DNA from: Piromyces finnis finn
Taxonomy: Eukaryota; Fungi; Neocallimastigomycota
Direction: 5' to 3'
Assembly (NCBI GenBank): GCA_002104945.1
Contig: MCFH01000007.1
Location: forward strand, 744,001-808,000
Length of the DNA stretch: 64,000 bases
The stretch's first letter is position 1; every line of letters starts with the position of its first letter. The notes under the pieces are model-generated. The model did not search any database. It had not been told where the DNA came from and saw only the letters and a list, made by a program, of their open reading frames with translations. A program made the translations under genes and the position numbers. Shown piece by piece: positions 37,756 to 52,191 of this stretch.

Positions 37756-39305
37756 AGAATATTAATGAAAATTTCAGAAAATATGTAAATTCATTGTCTA
37801 ATTTAGCAGACATATTTATTAATGATGCTTACAGTCTATCTCATAATGAATATACGTAAATATTGCATTTTACATTAATTTTATAAATACTCCATTAATA
37901 TTATAATATATTTACAATCATTTTTATTATATTTATTATAATTCATCTTTTTTTTGCAATTACTATAAAAATAGCTCACTTGTTGGTTTAACAATACCAA
38001 CTAGAGTCTCTGGATTATTATTAAAACGAGAATTGGATGTAATATCATTAACAATGGATAATCCAAAAGGGCCATTTGTTGCAATCATTGGAGGGTAAAT
38101 TTTAGTATGAAAAATAAAAATGAAGTTTTACATTTTATTAATTAATGATAAAAATATTCTATTAATGCGTATTTACTATTTATATTATTTTAAACCTATT
38201 TTTGCCACAGACTTGATATTAATGAAAATTGCGAGTTAATGTATAATTTATTAGAAAAAGTTAATATTCTTATTATAATTGGTAATTTGGCCTTTGTTTT
38301 CAAATATGTTTTAAATAATATAAAGGTACAAGAATAAGGAATTAAAAGATAAATATAATATAGTATAAAATTATTTCATATATAAAAAAAAGCAATAATA
38401 AATTTTAATGTAATAATAATTAATATATTAAAATATTATTATTATAGATTGGTTGCTCAGAATTTGATGAAAATTTAGTCGATTTTGTTAATAACATTAT
38501 AGAAAAAGCAAGAAAATATAAAGTAGAACTTTTCTTCCCAATTGATTATATTATTGCAAATAAATTAAGTAAAGATTCAAAAGTTGGAATAACAAATGAT
38601 AATCATGGAATACCAGGTACTAAAATTGATCTAAAAACAATAAGAACTTACAAAATGAAAAAATAATATTAAATAAATTAAATACTATATTTTTATTTTC
38701 TAATAGACGGTTGGACAGGTGTTGATATTGGACCAAAAAGTAATGTTATTTTTAATAAAATAATACTTTCAGCAAAAACCATATTTTGGATTGGGTAGGT
38801 TTTTTAATTTATATATATATATATATATATATATACGAATATTATTAAAAAAAATGATGAAAATATGATTAAAATATAATTAATAAATTCATTTAGAGTG
38901 GCAGGTTATCATGAAATTGATAAATTTTCAAAAGGAACAAAGCATCTTATTGAATCAATTGCTGAATCTACACTTCAAGGAGCTATATCTATAGCAGCAG
39001 GAAAAGATACTGTAAAAGCAATCGCAAAATATAAAGCTCAAAATAAAATATGGTAATTATCTCTTAAAATTATAAATTTAAAAATCACTATATATTTGTT
39101 ATTTAATTATTATTTTATTTTATTTTATTTTATAGTCATATCTCAACTGGAAATTCAAAAACATTCGAGGTAAAAAAAAATCATATATTATTAGATTATA
39201 AATAGATATAAATATTTAAAAAATAAAATTAATTCAAAATTTGTTTAACAGTACTTAGATTGTAATATGCTTCCAGGTGTAATAGCTTTATCAAACAAAA
39301 TTTAA
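37107..39305 (+). CDS. Phosphoglycerate kinase-like protein with degenerate catalytic motifs (probable pseudoenzyme); 10 exons
   Basis: Full-length colinear PGK: KLSIKDVNIENKRVLIRVDYNIP, SHL, FIPNCVG, LLENLKFHPEE, LADIFINDA, GLLLKREL, PFVAIIGG, PIDY, DGWTGVDIGPKS, AKTIFW, FSKGT, HISTG, LPGVIALS. All 9 introns are phase-consistent and I found no internal stop. Confidence 0.92.
37667..37753. repeat. (TTTA)n intronic microsatellite
   Basis: Direct reading; lies inside intron 2 of the PGK-like gene. Confidence 0.92.
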
Positions 39306-40115: not shown

Positions 40116-41960
40116 ATGTATTCAAAATTATCAGTAAAAATAAAGTATATAAAAAAAATTTTTATATTTGGGTTTTTTTTCATTTCAATATTACTTATAA
40201 TTTTAGGTATGTTTTTTACTTAAAATAAAAGTACTTATTAAGAAAAAAACAATATTTATATGATTTTATTTTTAAAATATAAAAAATAAATATTGATATA
40301 ATATATAGGACATAAACCACTTCATAATTCAAAAATTAATAAAAGAGAAGAAAGCACTAATGTTAAAAATAAATTAATATCATATTTCAAAAATGAATTA
40401 CACAATTTATTTTCTTTAACGAGAGATAATTTAATAGTAAATGATGATGAATTTGATATAAATAAACTTAATTTAACAGTGAAAACTTTTACATATTCGT
40501 TAGACGAATATCGATCATATAATGAAACAAACAAAAATATAAAAAAGAAAAGGAAAAGATCTGATGAAACAATTACTATCAGAGGATTGTTTCAGACATC
40601 AGCACCTGGAATTGCAGATACAAATATTGAAAAAGACTTATTATTGAAATTGTTATATGAATGGGCACCAAAAAATTTAGAAAACTATGATAATATATCA
40701 TTTGAATTAACTTTTGTAAATGCATCAAAACAAACAACAGATTATGAAAAAATGGTATCCCAACAGCTTAATGGAAAAAATAGTAAATATGATTTTTATA
40801 TGATTGATTCAGTATGGACCGGAAGGTACGGTGAACATTTAATTGATCTTCAAGGAAAAGTTAGTGCAGAATCTGTTAATAAATTTGCGAAAGTCAATTT
40901 AGATTCATGTAAATATGAAAATAAATTAACAGCACTGGTATATATTATATCATAATTATTCATATATAATATTAAAAATCATATGTAATATTCACATTTT
41001 CAATTTCTATATTATTCATTTTTAATTCAAAAGCCATTATACTCTGATTATGGTGTGCTATTATATAGAAAAGATTTATTAGAAAAGTATAATCAAAATA
41101 TTCCAGAAACATGGGATCAATTAGAATATATAGCAGAGTATATTTTAGAAAAAGAAGGAGGTGACCTTGAAGGATTTGCTGGGCAATTTAAAGGTAATTC
41201 AACTTAAAATATATATTATACAGTTTCAAAAATGTATATTCATTATTTATTAAAAATAAAATAAAAATAAAAATATGTATATGCTATAAAGCTTATGAAG
41301 GATTAACATGCAATATTTATGAATGGATATATTCATTCAGAGATGAGGTTAACACTAAATTAAATTACTTTAATGATGATTTTGCATTAAAAGCATTGAA
41401 AAAATTAATATCGTTATTGAATAAATCTATTATATCAAGTAAATATAAGATAATAATAAATTTTTTTAGTTTAATTAATAATACTCTTATCATTAAATAC
41501 TTTACTTTTTTATTTCAACATTATCATAAAAAAAATAAAATAAAAAATATACTAGCTGAAGCATTGATTTATGAAGAATCAACATCATTAGAAAAATGGG
41601 AAAAAGGAAAGGTATTATTTATGAGAAATTGGCCAAATGCTTTACAATCTACCGAAGAAATGTTTAATTCCACCGGTGTTAAGTTTCCATTTGGAATGGC
41701 AAGACTTCCTGGAAGAAAGGTAGGATTATCAGCTGCAACACTTGGAGGATGGAATTTAGGAGTCTCAAAATACTCAAATAACCCTTTTATTGCTGCAAGA
41801 GTAGTTGAATTTTTAACCGGAGAATATAGTCAAAAACAAAGGGCATTAAAATTTAGCGTATTGCCAACTATTACAAATTTATATTCAGGTATATAAATAA
41901 ATTATAATATAAAAACATATTATTTTATTATTTTATTCCATTAAAAAATTAATATTAATG

Positions 41961-42013
<53 letters not shown>

Positions 42014-44770
42014 CAGATAAAGATATATGTAATGTTATTATGTGTGAAATATATAAAGACATTCAAGCTATTAATAGACCATCAAATGAAGAAAACTATT
42101 TAGATCTTTCACAGGTAATTTATGAAACAATTCATAAAGCATTAGAAAATACTATTTCTGCTGAAGATGCTATTAAAACAATTAAAAAATATACAAATAG
42201 TACGTTATTACAATTAAATTTTATTTAGTTGTCTATAATTATTTACTTTCATAATTATATAATTAAAATAATTTCCTTTTGACCATTATAATATTATAAT
42301 ATATCAAAGCTGAATACATTCACAGTAATTATCCTTCTACTATTCTAATCCTTGGATGTACAATTTTATTACAAATAATAATTCTTGTAATAGCATGTGT
42401 TATATTAAAATATAGAAAGTTAAAATTTATTCAACGGTCAAATCCAATTTATATGTTTATTATACTTTTTGGATTGTGTTTACAATGTTTTACTATTTAT
42501 AGTTATGTTGGTAAACCAAACGACAATATATGTACATTAAGAGCATGGATAACAAATATACCATTAACTATAATTATTATGGCGATTTTTACTCAGGTAT
42601 ATTTATTTATAAATAATGTTCTTTTTTTTTCGAAAAAAAAATATTAAGTATAATAATACTAACTTTTTATCTATTATATTTAATAACTTTTAAAAGTCTT
42701 TTAGAATTTATGTTATTCTAAATAATGATAAATTTAAAAAATTAGAAATTCTTTTGAAAAATAAATTTTTATTATTATTAATATTCTTCTTTGTTGCTTT
42801 AGTTTCATTATTACTATCTATTGGACAAATACTAGACCCCGTTGTACAGCAAACAAAAACAATAAAAATTGACTCAAATGAGGTAGAGAAATATTATATA
42901 TGTACATCAAAAGATAATATAACAAGTGCTGTATATTTCATATTGGTTATCATAGATGGTATTATTATCTTTACAGGTATTTATATATCAAAAGAAATTA
43001 AATCAGTAGCATCAGAATTCTATGAAAGTGTACACATTACATATGCTCTTTATTGTAAGTGTTATTTTATAATTCTTTTTCTTTGATATAAGACACTAAT
43101 AAATATATATACACATATATTAACTAGGTATTCTGACTACCCATGTAATATTATATTTGTTAACATTCACATTTTTATCAAATGTGTATACAGTATTTTA
43201 TATTAAATCTTCTCTAATTCTATTGTGCGTATTATTCGTAACTGTTTTAATCTTTTTCCCGAAAATGAGCTCTCTTTATCTATATAGAAAACGTCAAAAA
43301 AAGAAAAAGATGATGAAAAATAAATCAATGTGGAAAAATAATGAAAATTCTGACTATGATATCATAAGTGCAGATATTATTGGTAGCAATATATCAAAAA
43401 AAAGTAAAAACAGTAAAAATAAAAATCCTAAAACTCTGAGTATTTATAAATCTGAAAATAATATCAATGAAGAAGAAGATGATGATGACATAAAATCAAC
43501 CACATCTTCTTGTTTCACAAACTATTCGCCAGATACATTAAATACAATAAAAGGTGTATTGTTAGTACGGAATTCAAATAATGTTTCATCATTAAAAAAT
43601 AAAAGTTTTGAACATTGCAAAGTTGTACTTATAATGGATGCAAAAATTTTATCAATAGAATTATTACTTGACTCTGATGCCAGCGAAAAAATACAAAAAT
43701 TATATGATAAAGAAGTTAATAATAGTAATAATATATATAAAAGTATTGATCACCATTACATACACTCAGTATTAAGAGACAAAAGACAAATTATATCTAT
43801 GCTTAATATATCGCTATGTCGAGATACTAATATAATTAAAGAGCATATTATTAGGTTCGTTGTAGAAGATCTAACATGGTATGAATTTTTAATTGAAGAC
43901 GATAACGAATTTAGAAGATGGATGGATTCAATGGAGAGTGTACTTAAGCAAAATTTGAATGACTTTTTCGGAATCGAATTTGTACCAAAGCCAATTGAAG
44001 ACTATTCCACGGATGAAAAAGATGATAATATTTCTGTTAATAACGTATTAAATCAGTATACTTCAACCTCAAGTATTAATAATATTAAATTGTCAACATC
44101 TTTCTATACCAATATGGATGCTAATAATCTATACAAATTTACTAAGAAGAAGTTATCTATAAATTTAGAAAATATTAAAAACGAAAACATTGATAATATA
44201 AATAAATATAAATATGTCATGGAACACAGTATAAATTCATTTTCGCCAAGTGACTTCTCATACACAGATAATAAATTAAAAGGTAATCAAAGTGATTTCT
44301 CGTGTGTTTCAGTTATTAAGCCAAGTAATAAAAGTGTAAAAAGTAAAAGAAACAAAAATAAAAGTATAGATAATATCTCTTTTGAATTAAGTGGAAATCA
44401 TATATCAAATAGAAGAGGAAGTTCTGTATCAATGGATACTACTTTTAGCTACGCGAAAAGAGATATATATTCAAATAAGGAATCAAAAAAACAAAATAAT
44501 GAAATAAGTACAACTAATAAATTACTCAAAAATTATAATAACTTCTCGAATTACAATAATAAAAGTATTGGAAGTATGCCTAATTACAACGAATCTATAA
44601 ATAATACACATGAAAGAAAAAGAAACAATAGTTTAGGTGAATTACATTATAGTAATGAGAGAATAAACCTTAATAATAATATAGACAATGGTTCAATATC
44701 GGTTCCAAATATTGAAATAAATTATATTACTGCAAATAATAGCAAAAATACTAACAACAACAACAGCAGC

Positions 44771-44813
<43 letters not shown>

Positions 44814-44911
44814 GTAATTCTTTGAAAAATAATTACAATATATCCGCCGAAAATGATTATATTATTCAAATTCAAAATAATAATAATAGCAATACTAAAT
44901 TTTCTAAATAA
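40116..44911 (+). CDS. Class C (7tm_3, GABA-B-like) GPCR with an N-terminal bacterial-type ABC sugar-binding domain and a C-terminal PH-like domain; copy 1
   Basis: Hydrophobic leader MYSKLSVKIKYIKKIFIFGFFFISILLIILG. SBP motifs: YDFYMIDSVWTGRY, LPLYSDYGVLLYRKDLLEKYNQNIPETWDQL, GFAGQFKAYEGLTCN, FMRNWP, TLGGWNLGVSKYSNN. 7TM motifs: KYRKLKFIQRSNP, CTLRAW, DP...YYIC, KSVASEFYES, LIFFPK. PH-like segment ending FLIEDDNEFRRWMDSMESVL. Confidence 0.88.
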
Positions 44912-45223: not shown

Positions 45224-48200
45224 ATGGGAAAATATACCATAATAAATAAAAACTATAGTCTTGTTATATATATAAAAATAATAATATTATTATTCATAGT
45301 AATTATTAGTATACCTTTTTTACTTGGTAAAACAACCTTTTTAATAATCTATTAAATATAATTGAATAAAAATTAATTATAAATTTAAAATAATAATATT
45401 TTATGTATATATAAAAGATTTTCCTTATATAAAAGATAAATATAACAATAATAATAATGTAATAAGCGGAAAATATAAAAAATCATTAGATGAAAATAAT
45501 ATATTGTATAAAACTAATAATACAAGTAAAAGTGGATATGAATTTAAGGAAAGCATTGAATACATTTATTTGGATTCAAATAAATTAGATTTAATAATTA
45601 AAAGTTATACATATTTATTAGACAATTTTAGATCAAATAGTCAATCAACCAAGCATAGCAACAATAATATTTCTATTAGAGGATTATTTGATAACTCACT
45701 ACCAGGAATTATAGAATCACTATCTGAAAGTGGAATATTCGAAAGCGCATTAAAAGAATGGGCATCTGGAATTCTTGATGGATATGAAAGTATCACATTC
45801 GAGTTAGCACATATTTATACTTTGAAAAAAAATGTTGATTATGAAAAAATATTATCTCAACAACTTAAAATAAAAAATAGTAAATTTGATTACTTTATGC
45901 TAGATTGTGTATGGACAGGAAAATATGGAAATCATTTTATTGATCTTCAAAAAAAAATAAATCCAAATACAGTCAAAGTTCACTCTCCAGTTAGCTTAAA
46001 TACCTGTAAATATAATTTAAAATTAAAAGCATTGGTGAATATTAAAACATTGAATAGATTGTATAAATATAAATTTTTATTTATATATCTATATAATTAA
46101 TATAATTAATATATTTTGTATCAAAGCCATTATATTCAGATTATGGGATTATGCTATATAGAAAAGATTTACTGGAGAAATATAATAAAACTGTTCCTAA
46201 TACATGGAGTGAATTAGAATCAACAGCAACATACATTATGAAAATGGAAGAAACCTTAGGAAATAAAGAATTAGAAGGTTTTGCAGGGCAATTTAAATGT
46301 AATTTTAATAAAAAGTAAAATTTTTATATATATTTTTATATTTTAACAATAATAAATATCTTTTTATAATGAAAAGCCTATGAAGGCTTAACATGCAACA
46401 TATATGAATGGATATATTCATTCAGAGATAAATATGATTCAACCCTTGATTATTTTAATGATCATTCTTCCTTGACAGCGTTAAAAAAGCTTATATCTTT
46501 TTTTAGTAAATCCATTATATCACGTAATAATATAAAACTTTTTTTAAAAACTAATTTTATAGGTATATAATTTTTTACTATGGAATATATTAAATTGTTG
46601 AATAAATTTTTTTATAGATGAAGCGTTAATATACGATGAACCAACTTCCTTAGATAAATGGAAAAAAGGAAATGTATTATTTCTTAGAAATTGGCCAAAT
46701 AGTGTTCGAAGTACAGAAGAATCATTTAAAAATTCTGAAATAAATTTTTCTTTTGGAGTAACAAAACTTCCTGGTAGAATACCTGATTTATCTGCATCAA
46801 CACTTGGAGGATGGAATGTAGGTGTTTCTAAATACTCAAAAAATACTCTTCTTTCATCAAAATTCATCGAACTTATGTCTGGAGAAAAAGTTCAAAAAAA
46901 ATTAATAATTGATTTAGGCCTACTTCCAACGATTAAAACCCTATATTATGGTAAAATAAAAAAAATGAATAATACATAATAATTTCTTTTTTCAATTTAA
47001 ATTTTATTAAATAAAATATTTTCGATTTTAAAAATAAAGATAAAGAAGTATGCAATGTTATTATGTGTGATGTCTATAAAGATCTTCAAGGAATCAATAG
47101 ACCCTCAGATGATGAAAATTATTTAGAATATTCAAAAATCATTTACGAAACGATATTTAACTCATTGCGTAATTCTATAACACCAGAAATGGCAATTAAT
47201 ACAATAAAGAAATATACTAATGGTATACTTATATTAGCATATTATATATTACACTGATAATTATTTATAAATCATATATTAATATCTCTTTTTTTTTATA
47301 TTTATAATACTAACATGCTCTACAGTTAAATATATTAACGTTTCAAAACCAATTACAATTACGATGATTGGATGTACAATAATATGTCAAGGATTAATGT
47401 TTATTATTGCATATAATTTAATAAAATATAGAAAACTGAAATGTATCTATAAATCAAATTTAGTATCATTAATAGCACTTCTTATAGGTTTACTTTTTTA
47501 TTCCTCCACAGTTTATTACTTTATTGGTGATTTAAAAGAAAATAAATGTTCAATAACTTTATGGATAATGAATCTATCAATGATATTCATTACATCAATT
47601 TTATTGATTAGGGTATTTTAATATTAAATTTAGAATGAATGACTAATTGCTTCTATAAATATTATTTATATATCATATATTAACAATTATTAAATTTATT
47701 ATAATTAATGTTTTATTAAAAAAAAGTCTCTAAGAATTTGTATTATATTAAATTACTGTAGAATCAAGTTTGTCAATATCTTAATTAAAAAAAAAGTATT
47801 AATATTTATATTCGTCAGTATTATCATTATTATTGTATTGTTACTTTCATTGGCTCAAATTATTGATCCAATAGAAAGAAAAACAAGAATAATTAGACTT
47901 GATGATATTGAAATTGAAAGGTTTTATGTCTGTGAGAACAAAAACAAATATTCATTAATTATATATGGAATTATTGCTATAATTAGTTTCATTATAAATC
48001 TTAGCGGATGGTATATATCGAAAAAAATTAAATCTGTAGCATTAAATTTTTATGAAAGCATAAATATTGATAAACCTTTTATTGGTAAAAAATAAAAAAT
48101 CACTATTATTATGATATGATAATTAACCAAAAAATATATAATAGTTTAACTTATGATAATTTTACTATTTTTTTTTTTTTAATATTTCTTTCCATTTAGG

Positions 48201-49329
48201 TTTCCTTTTAACATACATAATTCTTATACTTTCACAATTCACATACATATCAAATATATATTTACTATTTTGTTTAAAAACACTGATAATATTAGCTAAC
48301 ACAATCTATGTTACCATTATAATCTATTATCAAAAAATATCTTCAGTTTATTTATATATAAAAAATCAAAAAAAAAAGAAAAAGAGAGTTATCCTTAAAA
48401 TCAATAACAATAGTAGAAGTAATATAAATTTTATAAATGCAGAAATTCGGAGTGATAATTATTTATCAAAAAATCAAAACTACATCAATAGATCTATAAT
48501 AAATAGTACAGTAATAAATATGAATGGCATAGTCGCAGATACAACTTCAAGTATAATTTCATGTTTTTCTAATTATGCTGAAGATACTACAAATATTCTT
48601 AAAGGTATTATATATGCAAAACATTCCACTACTATTAATGAACTGGTAAAAAGAAATTTTTTCCAATGTGAAATTGAATTGATAAAAGATGTTAAATTTA
48701 TGGCTATAAGAACAATTCAAAATACATATACTGCCGAGAATAAAATGGCATCTGAATTTAGCATAAATAAGAAAAAAATTGTATCATTATTAAATATGGC
48801 TCTCTGTAAGGAATATAATATGAAAAATAATCATAATATTCGATTCACTATCCAAGGTTCGTTATGGTTTGAATTATTATTTGAGAATGATGAAGAGTAC
48901 AAACATTGGAATGAAACTCTACAAAATATTGAAAAACAAAATATAAGTAGTATTTATGAAATGAATGATGAATCAGAAACAAAAGAAGATTATTCTCAAT
49001 ATATACTAAATAATGATAATGCTATTTCAGAAATATTAAATGAATATAATTATTATTATTATTATAATATTGAAGATAATAATAATGAAAATCAAAAAAA
49101 TGATGGTAACAACAACGATATTAATAATAATGATAATAATAATAATAATAAAACCATTAAAATAAAAAACACAAATATTTCAACATCATTCTACATAAAT
49201 AAAGATGTAAATAATTTATATAAGGAAACAAAAAAGAAACTAAACATAACATTTGACAATCTCCAGATGAAAAATAATGATAATAATAGTAAACAATCGT
49301 ATATCTTGAGTCATTTATTAGTTCATTAA
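45224..49329 (+). CDS. Tandem paralog: sugar-binding domain/class C GPCR/PH-like domain; copy 2
   Basis: Leader MGKYT...IILLFIVIISIPFLLG. SBP motifs: FDYFMLDCVWTGKYG, PLYSDYGIMLYRKDLLEKY, GFAGQF, YEGLTCNIYEWIYSF, FLRNWP, TLGGWNVGVSKYSKN. 7TM motifs: KYRKLKCIYKSN, DPIERK...FYVC, KSVALNFYES. PH-like segment ending FENDEEYKHWNETLQNI. Exon layout parallels copy 1. Confidence 0.86.
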
Positions 49330-49798: not shown

Positions 49799-52191
49799 TT
49801 AATTATTATCACTACTACTGTCATCATCATCGCCAAATACATCATTATAATAATCATCATCGTCATCATCTAAGTAGTTATAAAAAAAAAAAAAAAATTA
49901 TTTAGTTAATCTGACAGATATATATTACTAATTACAGTTATAAAATATTTTTAAAGGAGTACCTATATCATTACTATTCTCAACACTGCTATTATTAACT
50001 GATAAATTCTTCATTAATTCCTTTATACTTTTATTTATACTTTCAGCTGTTGTACTTGCTGATTGTTCAGTTTCATTATCTTCTTCACTCTCTTCATAAT
50101 CACTTTCTATATCATCCACATTTTCATTATTATTGTTATCTTCCATTAATTTTTGTACTTTTCTTCTTAATTCTTCTCTTATTTTATCTAGTTTTTGTCT
50201 CGTATACCAACCATCTCTATCCTTTAATAAAATAAAATTTTAATAATATTCTATATTTATATATTAATATTTATTAAATAACGCTATTATTACATTAAAT
50301 TCTTTAAGAAGACCCTTTTTAGTATGAACCATTTTTTTTAATTTTGCATCAGACAAATCACAAAGTTGATATATAATATTTCCACTAAATGTTTTTCCAT
50401 TAAAAATATGAGATATTATATTTCTTTTTGGTTTACTATTTATAAATATTAAAAAAAAAAAAAAAAAAAAAAAATGTTAATATGATTATTTGATATAAAA
50501 ATAATTAAAGCGTATTTAATACATCATTGATATATACTTTTCTTTTGGTGTATTTCGTCCTAATGAAATATTTAAAAATAATTTTGATGATTCTGATTCA
50601 TTAATATTATGACGTTTTGCTCTATTTAATGGTCTTGGACCTTTGATATTACGTATATCCATTGTTTGATAAATTCTAAACTCATCACTTATTCTTGGAT
50701 CAACACCATATTTAATCCAACAATCTCTGAATGCCCCATGAACTACTGTATATGAAACCAAAGGTAAAAGTTGTTTTATTCTTTTAATACTATCTTCTGA
50801 TAAATTGTTTACTAATGCAATCCTACTCCATACTGGTCTTTTATCAAATAATTCTGATATTTCATTAACATAGGTACTAGAAATATATTTTGAATGAGCT
50901 GTTGCGGCAGCTGGAGGTTTTGTTGGGATTTGACAATTTGGATCAGATAAATCCACTGTTGCAATAATTAATTTTGTTTTTTTAGATCTATTAATTAATT
51001 TCAAAACAGGCTATATATAGATTTTATATAAATACAATTATTAAAAATATTTAAATAAATTTATATTATTATCAATATTTAAGTTTTTTCTTTTTTTTTT
51101 TTTATAAAGTATGGTTATTATAATCATATTATTTTTCTTTATCACTCTTTATAATATGTATATAAAATACCTCTTCGTCCTTCTTCTTAACAAATACTTT
51201 AACAACTGAAGTTAATTGAAGATATCTAATTAATTTTTAAAATTGTTAATATTATAATGAAATGTTAGTAAAAAAAAAAAAAAAAAAAAAAAGTAAGAAT
51301 ATTGTATAATATTAAATTATAAATTCTTTGTATTAATCATTACCCATAATTTTGTGGCCACTCAATACTAGTAAATACAGGTGCCGGTATATTACATAAT
51401 TCATTTTTATTATTATCTGTTATATTTTTATAGCTTTCCAATTTATCAACTATAACAATACATTTATAAATAATAAAGATATTTAATTTTAAATATATTG
51501 ATATTATATACATATAATTAAGCAGTATTATTAAAATGTTATTTAAATAAAATAATGTAATTACCATCTAAATCTTTTATTGCTTTTGCTAATTTTGGCA
51601 TATCATAAGAGAATTTTGGAATTATTTGATAATCAGACATTCCTATTAAAATTACATTTATCGATATTAATAATTTTTTTGAGAAATATAATAAAAAATA
51701 TAAATACTGAATTTTTGTTTAATTAACATAAATTTAAGAAAAAAAAAGTTATTATTTTAATACCTCTAAAACGTCCAACTTTCGTTACAACTCCAACAAT
51801 TTTATATGAAATTTCCCATGGACCAGGTTTCTCCCCTGGTTTCTTTGCCTTCTTTCTTCTTCTTGTAATTTTTAACAAAGGATTAACTGTTTTCATAATT
51901 TCACCATTAATTGGATGACAAAATGGGCTTGTGGGTCTATAACGCAATTCTAAAACACTTGAATCTTTAAATGCCTAAATGTATTAAACATTGGAATTTA
52001 TTGAGTTTAAATATATTAGAGAAAACCTCTTTATAAATTAATACTAAAAATTACTTGACAAATTGATTCCATTCCACCAAGCATTTTATAAACTTTATTA
52101 ATATCTTTAACATAGCCAGGAAATTCTATTGAACAATATTCCTTTAAAGGAAAAGGATAAATTTGTGCCTCTTTATATTTTAATCCATTCT

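Follow-up and report, generated by a model that had tools for sequence, protein, structure and literature searches.

A conserved and highly divergent domain, predicted to adopt a PH fold, in the tail of a solute-binding class C receptor of Piromyces finnis

The genome of Piromyces finnis amounts to 56.5 Mb in 232 contigs with a G+C content of about 20%, and the window considered here, i.e., the whole stretch of 64,000 nucleotides that was analysed, encodes proteins sharing 88-90% identity with a hypothetical protein of Piromyces sp. E2. On its forward strand lie two tandem intron-bearing genes, each coding for a solute-binding domain of bacterial type followed by a class C seven-helix domain, namely:

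about 40116-44911, forward strand: receptor gene copy 1
about 45300-49329, forward strand: receptor gene copy 2

The extracellular and membrane parts of copy 1 can be delineated as follows, TM standing for transmembrane helix and SBP for solute-binding protein:

40116-40214, forward strand: approximate first exon, with the probable start and a signal-like hydrophobic helix (open segment with an ATG, hydropathy peak 2.92)
40302-42225, forward strand: exons of the extracellular type II SBP domain (approximate span, introns included; SBP_bac_8 and SBP_bac_1 matches)
42348-43258, forward strand: seven-helix class C membrane domain, TM1-TM7, in three exons (7tm_3 matches and hydropathy peaks)
43055-43127, forward strand: putative last intron, 73 nt, GT..AG, phase 1, within TM6 (from consensus splice sites)
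43202-43258, forward strand: TM7 (hydropathy 2.62), sharing exon and frame with the tail

In Pfam, the exon at 41396-41893 matched SBP_bac_8 and SBP_bac_1 at E 2e-4, and the orthologous gene models of copy 1 bear PF01547; the receptor exhibited these type II signals only, with neither an ANF/Venus-flytrap (type I) domain nor a nine-Cys domain, as described earlier for gut fungi. As for the membrane domain, 7tm_3 scored 37.6 bits on the exon at 42754-43083, for a cut-off of 33.5, and 29.9 bits on another exon, while hydropathy gave seven helices after the N-terminal signal-like helix once TM6 was joined across the intron. With 7tm_3 above its cut-off and seven membrane helices, copy 1 is thus a class C GPCR. 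Since the intron at 43055-43127 splits TM6, the last exon would extend over 43128-44911; this intron has a strong GT donor consensus, and the unspliced frame meets a stop at 43084-43086.

Behind TM7, the receptor carries a long tail, which by topology would be cytoplasmic and in which the following elements can be recognised:

43283-43324, forward strand: juxtamembrane Lys/Arg-rich stretch, present in all six loci described below
43325-43504, forward strand: low-complexity linker (Asn/Ser/Lys, then an acidic run), weakly conserved between lineages
43505-43546, forward strand: conserved cap at the N-terminal end of the domain, including a conserved Cys (alignments)
43547-43966, forward strand: predicted PH-fold domain (full-length homology to the modelled copy 2 domain, language-model features)
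43547-43666, forward strand: predicted strands 1-3 of the domain
43664-43780, forward strand: long loop linking strands 3 and 4, specific to the lineage and exceeding that of copy 2 by about 20 residues (six-sequence alignment)
43781-43897, forward strand: predicted strands 4-7 of the domain
43898-43951, forward strand: predicted C-terminal helix of the domain
43919-43921, forward strand: invariant Trp of the C-terminal helix
44093-44155 and 44201-44236, forward strand: two short conserved motifs downstream of the domain, shared by both copies and the second genus
44501-44560, forward strand: third conserved tail motif (copy 1 versus the second genus)
44852-44875, forward strand: conserved C-terminal motif, then the stop codon at 44909-44911

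The conserved module of this tail spans about 43505-43966 and sits some 95 residues past TM7. A PH-like domain had been proposed at this place in the initial annotation, and the residues quoted in its favour are indeed encoded at 43547-43945, within the open reading frame (ORF) 43157-44911 of the forward strand and in frame with TM7 and the basic stretch; they correspond to the first strand (43547-43570), the second strand (43607-43639), the strand past the long loop (43787-43819) and the last two strands together with the helix (43847-43945). The start then given, 43480, falls 67 bases ahead of the first strand and one base out of frame, which leaves the claim unaffected, and the Trp of the last helix, then called invariant, is present in the six sequences available. 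Further downstream, the motifs at 44093-44236 retain 15-18 identities out of 30 per alignment window among the two copies and the second genus. Altogether, four tail motifs (44093-44155, 44201-44236, 44501-44560 and 44852-44875) are kept between genera amid Asn-rich low-complexity sequence that is otherwise unalignable, and they may be docking or sorting signals. The corresponding region of copy 2 (48160-49329) ends at 49329, inside the second conserved motif; a full-length tail was considered for this copy and rejected, no homology being found past 49329.

Six loci, from two lineages of gut fungi, were found to contain the module, at each of them in frame after TM7 of a receptor combining SBP and class C 7TM domains. 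These loci, traced via two database matches and their contigs, comprise copy 1 and copy 2 of the present genome, the orthologues of both copies in Piromyces sp. E2, a copy 1 of Piromyces-like type from a metagenome and a single-copy gene present in two assemblies of the second lineage, which, given the accession GCA_002104975.1, is presumably Neocallimastix. Between lineages, as well as between paralogues, tblastn returned E values of 1e-21 to 1e-29, the identity between lineages being 30-41% over the whole module. When copy 1 of this genome was compared with that of Piromyces sp. E2, dN/dS was 0.056 for the module, 0.18 for the linker and 0.22 for the remaining tail, whereas the copy 2 domain appeared more relaxed at 0.28, all these ratios being rough as dS is near saturation. 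Copy 2 also evolves faster, as its domain and the orthologous one of Piromyces sp. E2 share 57% identity, whereas the value for copy 1 is 87%. Judged from the sequences, the stretch is a real conserved domain under strong purifying selection, which is more than chance would leave.

Whether this domain truly belongs to the receptor depends on the continuity of the gene, since the tail ORF could alternatively form a gene of its own or continue the receptor gene without being translated, in which case there would be no 7TM-PH protein. Public gene models can be read in that sense, as Piromyces sp. E2 is annotated with three models over the locus (L037:7047-11575), i.e., an SBP model of 266 aa, a 7tm_3 model of 127 aa and a tail model of 524 aa, and the second genus (L038:3916-11509 and L039:3429-11428) with a receptor model of 641 aa and a separate tail model of 199 aa, with doubtful introns. 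However, the model of 641 aa ends after TM3 and cannot be a complete receptor, the tail models start at internal Met codons located just past or within TM7, the gap of 246 bases between TM7 and the domain offers no promoter-sized space, and the frame remains open from TM7 through the domain in six loci out of six despite many indels in the linker. A separate or untranslated tail therefore appears highly improbable, and the order SBP, seven helices and PH-like domain put forward at first stands as far as a single uninterrupted frame from TM7 through the domain, observed at six loci, can establish it, on sequence grounds. Because the receptor is cut into two or three public models, the fusion went unnoticed; with locus models fragmented in at least two related assemblies, namely Piromyces sp. 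E2 and the second genus, surveys of protein architecture would miss this protein.

The nature of the domain is not apparent from sequence comparison. Searching Pfam with copy 1 and with the whole last exon returned no relevant family, and no catalytic-domain match was obtained in the tail. Among the six members, the best score for the Pfam PH family was 16.8 bits (E 0.01), for copy 2 of Piromyces sp. E2, which is below the PF00169 gathering threshold of 25.1; this sub-threshold match covers profile positions 37-102 and a match to PH_2 at E 0.043 covers positions 56-104, both in the correct C-terminal register. Aligning the family with ten PH domains of this genome by hhalign yielded no more than 23 columns, located about the last strand and the helix (P 0.046), and the family HMM showed no enrichment among 612 ORF pieces taken from the PH loci of the genome, one true PH domain reaching rank 3 at E 0.42. 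A sequence-profile search of the PDB returned nothing other than an irrelevant phosphatase at E 0.38. Protein-language-model features placed both paralogues, about 30% identical to each other, on PH clusters at 0.90, all the family-bearing neighbours belonging to the PH clan, which by the calibration of the tool is only moderate evidence.

The structure was predicted for copy 2, which has the shortest variable loop, from a shallow alignment of six sequences from four lineages, the modelled sequence being:

48574-48960, forward strand: predicted PH-fold domain of copy 2 (AlphaFold2 pLDDT 76.6, pTM 0.71)

The model displays seven strands (residues 8-18, 30-37, 42-47, 68-71, 75-77, 88-93 and 97-102) and a C-terminal helix (106-121), i.e., the seven-strand antiparallel beta-sandwich capped by a C-terminal helix by which a PH fold is recognised; its core blocks reach a pLDDT of 85-91, whereas a 15-residue loop and both ends fall below 50, the loop between strands 3 and 4 being of low confidence. 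Compared with the PDB by Foldseek, all best 50 matches were PH domains, with ASAP1 first (E 1.4e-4) and target-normalised TM scores of 0.6-0.7. Against 48,161 representative chains, VIA-align gave a best Z of 12.5 for the PH domain of ArhGAP9 (rmsd 2.9 over 101 residues) and 144 chains at Z >= 8, the matches listed being PH or PH-like domains; canonical PH domains headed the list at Z 10-12.5, and EVH1 (Homer), PTB (IRS-1) and Ran-binding domains followed at Z 9.5-9.8. In a shape search of the ESM Atlas, nine rows out of ten were PH-containing proteins and the remaining one had no family.

Such a fold could nonetheless be an artefact of prediction, the segment being conserved with some other fold or only partly ordered. 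The shallowness of the six-sequence alignment, the non-significance of every sequence-level PH test and the poorly predicted loop and ends of the copy 2 model would be in keeping with this explanation, as would the AlphaFold2 model of copy 1, which was built from four sequences and with a pLDDT of 41.5 is unusable. Against it, the five copy 2 models all have a mean pLDDT of 65-77 with the well-predicted core mentioned above, two independent aligners and three libraries place PH on top, the Z of 12.5 exceeds the values of 7-8 usually obtained when a model has no true match, and the sequence-only language-model features of two paralogues as distant as these both indicate PH. On balance, an artefact seems improbable, and the predicted model is assigned to the PH fold with high confidence; for copy 1, the fold would be transferred by homology from copy 2. 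The PH reading of the initial annotation is therefore borne out by the predicted structure of copy 2 and its structural neighbours, all PH at the top of the Foldseek list, while sequence methods lend it no significance and the direct modelling of copy 1 failed.

Compared with canonical PH domains (PF00169; e.g., ArhGAP9, ArhGAP27, ASAP1 and DAPP1), the module shares a predicted seven-strand sandwich, a C-terminal amphipathic helix and the conserved Trp, but differs by an identity of 6-18%, a Pfam score below the cut-off, the lack of the basic motif of strand 2 and a strand 3-4 loop that is long and variable; moreover, the former occur in soluble signalling proteins and the latter in a receptor tail. 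This divergence bears on function. As judged from the alignment and the predicted strands, not from coordinates, the phosphoinositide-binding motif K-Xn-(K/R)-X-R is represented by the conserved basic residue that terminates strand 1, whereas the two positions at the start of strand 2 are non-basic in the six sequences, one of them being an invariant Cys. A classical phosphoinositide-binding PH domain, targeting or clustering the receptor on membrane rich in PIP2 or PIP3, would agree with the presence of lipid-bound PH domains among the top structural neighbours (ArhGAP9, ASAP1, DAPP1, Akt and TAPP1) and with the conservation of Lys/Arg where strand 1 ends, in the loop between strands 1 and 2, in strand 3 and ahead of strand 4. 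Against this stand the altered strand 2 positions and the net charge of the domain, which varies from -3 to +10 between lineages; besides, most PH domains do not bind phosphoinositides specifically. The canonical lipid motif being absent, a classical lipid pocket is unlikely, and so is the corresponding explanation as a whole, though a weak basic patch on the domain is possible.

Another explanation would see in the module a peptide-binding member of the PH-like superfold, of PTB, EVH1 or Ran-binding type, possibly acting as an autoinhibitory clamp on a motif of its own tail. The Z of 9.5-9.8 obtained for such domains fits this scheme, as do the conserved Tyr-containing motifs located 50-100 residues downstream of the domain, but canonical PH domains score higher and stand atop every list, and PTB, WH1 and Ran_BP1 gave no Pfam signal in the domain; it is thus regarded as distinctly unlikely. 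The preferred reading is that 43505-43966 encodes a real, conserved and highly divergent PH-fold domain in the tail of an SBP-class C receptor, acting as a receptor-tethered docking module, which we consider likely as a whole, the docking role itself being our best guess. Under this docking reading, the basic juxtamembrane stretch would keep the domain near the inner leaflet of the membrane. In the absence of the canonical phosphoinositide motif, a protein partner is thought more likely; candidates would be G-beta-gamma, a small GTPase or a motif of the receptor's own tail, or else the conserved Lys/Arg at the open end of the barrel might make weak contact with acidic lipids. Movement of the seven helices driven by the ligand would then change what the receptor recruits. 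The genome has G-alpha and G-gamma genes, so that G-beta-gamma is a conceivable partner.

The tails of GPCRs are usually seen as disordered strings of phosphorylation and docking sites, and PH domains are brought to receptors in trans, GRK2 being an example. The PH domain of GRK2, which appears among the structural matches (7pwd, Z 9.8), is likewise a PH domain that acts at an activated GPCR, but there it is part of a soluble kinase, recruited in trans, and has G-beta-gamma and PIP2 as ligands, whereas the predicted domain would here reside in cis on the receptor. In the GPCR-bigrams of oomycetes and other protists, namely GPCR-PIPK, -INPP, -AC, -PDE and -TKL, the accessory domain is catalytic by definition (PMC6033456, PMC5784254). 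Bigrams and the present receptor have in common a seven-helix receptor with a folded signalling domain at its cytoplasmic C-terminus, but the predicted fold here is a non-catalytic interaction fold behind a class C 7TM domain, which places the protein outside the bigrams as defined. GPR155/LYCHOS, with seven helices and a C-terminal DEP domain, and the 7TM-RGS proteins of plants and fungi come close by their non-catalytic or regulatory cytoplasmic domain behind seven helices, and differ by the fold, DEP or RGS, and by the class of receptor. The literature on GPCR-bigrams, GPCR evolution and choanoflagellate GPCRs describes fusions with PIPK, INPP, AC, PDE, TKL, DEP and RGS domains and none with PH.

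In the gut fungi themselves, Seppala et al. 2016 (PMC5168858) reported 32 class C receptors for Piromyces, of which roughly one in two has a type II SBP domain, i.e., the same extracellular SBP and 7tm_3 combination as here. Neither that paper nor the text of its supplements mentions a cytoplasmic domain on SBP-class C receptors, and PH-like annotation in the supplements is tied to Ran-binding proteins only (PMC5168858). As had been claimed at the outset, GPCRs with an integral PH domain were not found described in any paper, which applies to the published literature as distinct from database-level architectures such as those of InterPro. If true, a PH fold in cis would be a new entry among the few GPCRs with folded cytoplasmic modules, i.e., PIPK and other bigrams, DEP and RGS, and would offer a tractable handle on signalling by the large and uncharacterised carbohydrate-type class C family of biomass-degrading gut fungi. 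It may even be, though this is tentative and on the doubtful side, that the receptor is the first GPCR with a built-in PH fold, hidden by split gene models, in which docking in cis to the membrane or to G-beta-gamma short-circuits sugar sensing to inner-leaflet signalling or polarity.

The distribution of the module is narrow. At least 70 loci of the genome match 7tm_3 and PF00169 has 39 matches, but the module occurs only twice, in the two receptor genes of the window. Other GPCRs of this genome with a PH domain were sought and rejected, as every 7tm_3 locus is more than 10 kb away from the nearest PF00169 match. A HMMER search of 1.84 billion representative proteins with the family profile retrieved its own kin only, namely the Piromyces sp. 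E2 protein and one tail fragment; a word-based protein search returned two close Piromyces proteins only, and no match when the ORF of the second genus served as query. No relative of the domain was confirmed by a scan of JGI metagenomes. Within the present genome, as far as sequence matches can tell, the architecture is confined to one syntenic receptor group, which is single-copy in the second genus and a tandem duplicate in Piromyces. The two genera share the gene order, in which the one or two receptor genes follow a PGK-like gene and precede Tau95 (minus strand) and then ribosomal S19e; in the window, the flanking genes lie at 37107-39305 and 50516-51004 (minus strand). At the copy 2 locus of Piromyces sp. 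E2 (L037:14200-18250), the stretch from TM7 to the domain is flanked by two long runs of N, i.e., assembly gaps, which make the full gene unreadable there.
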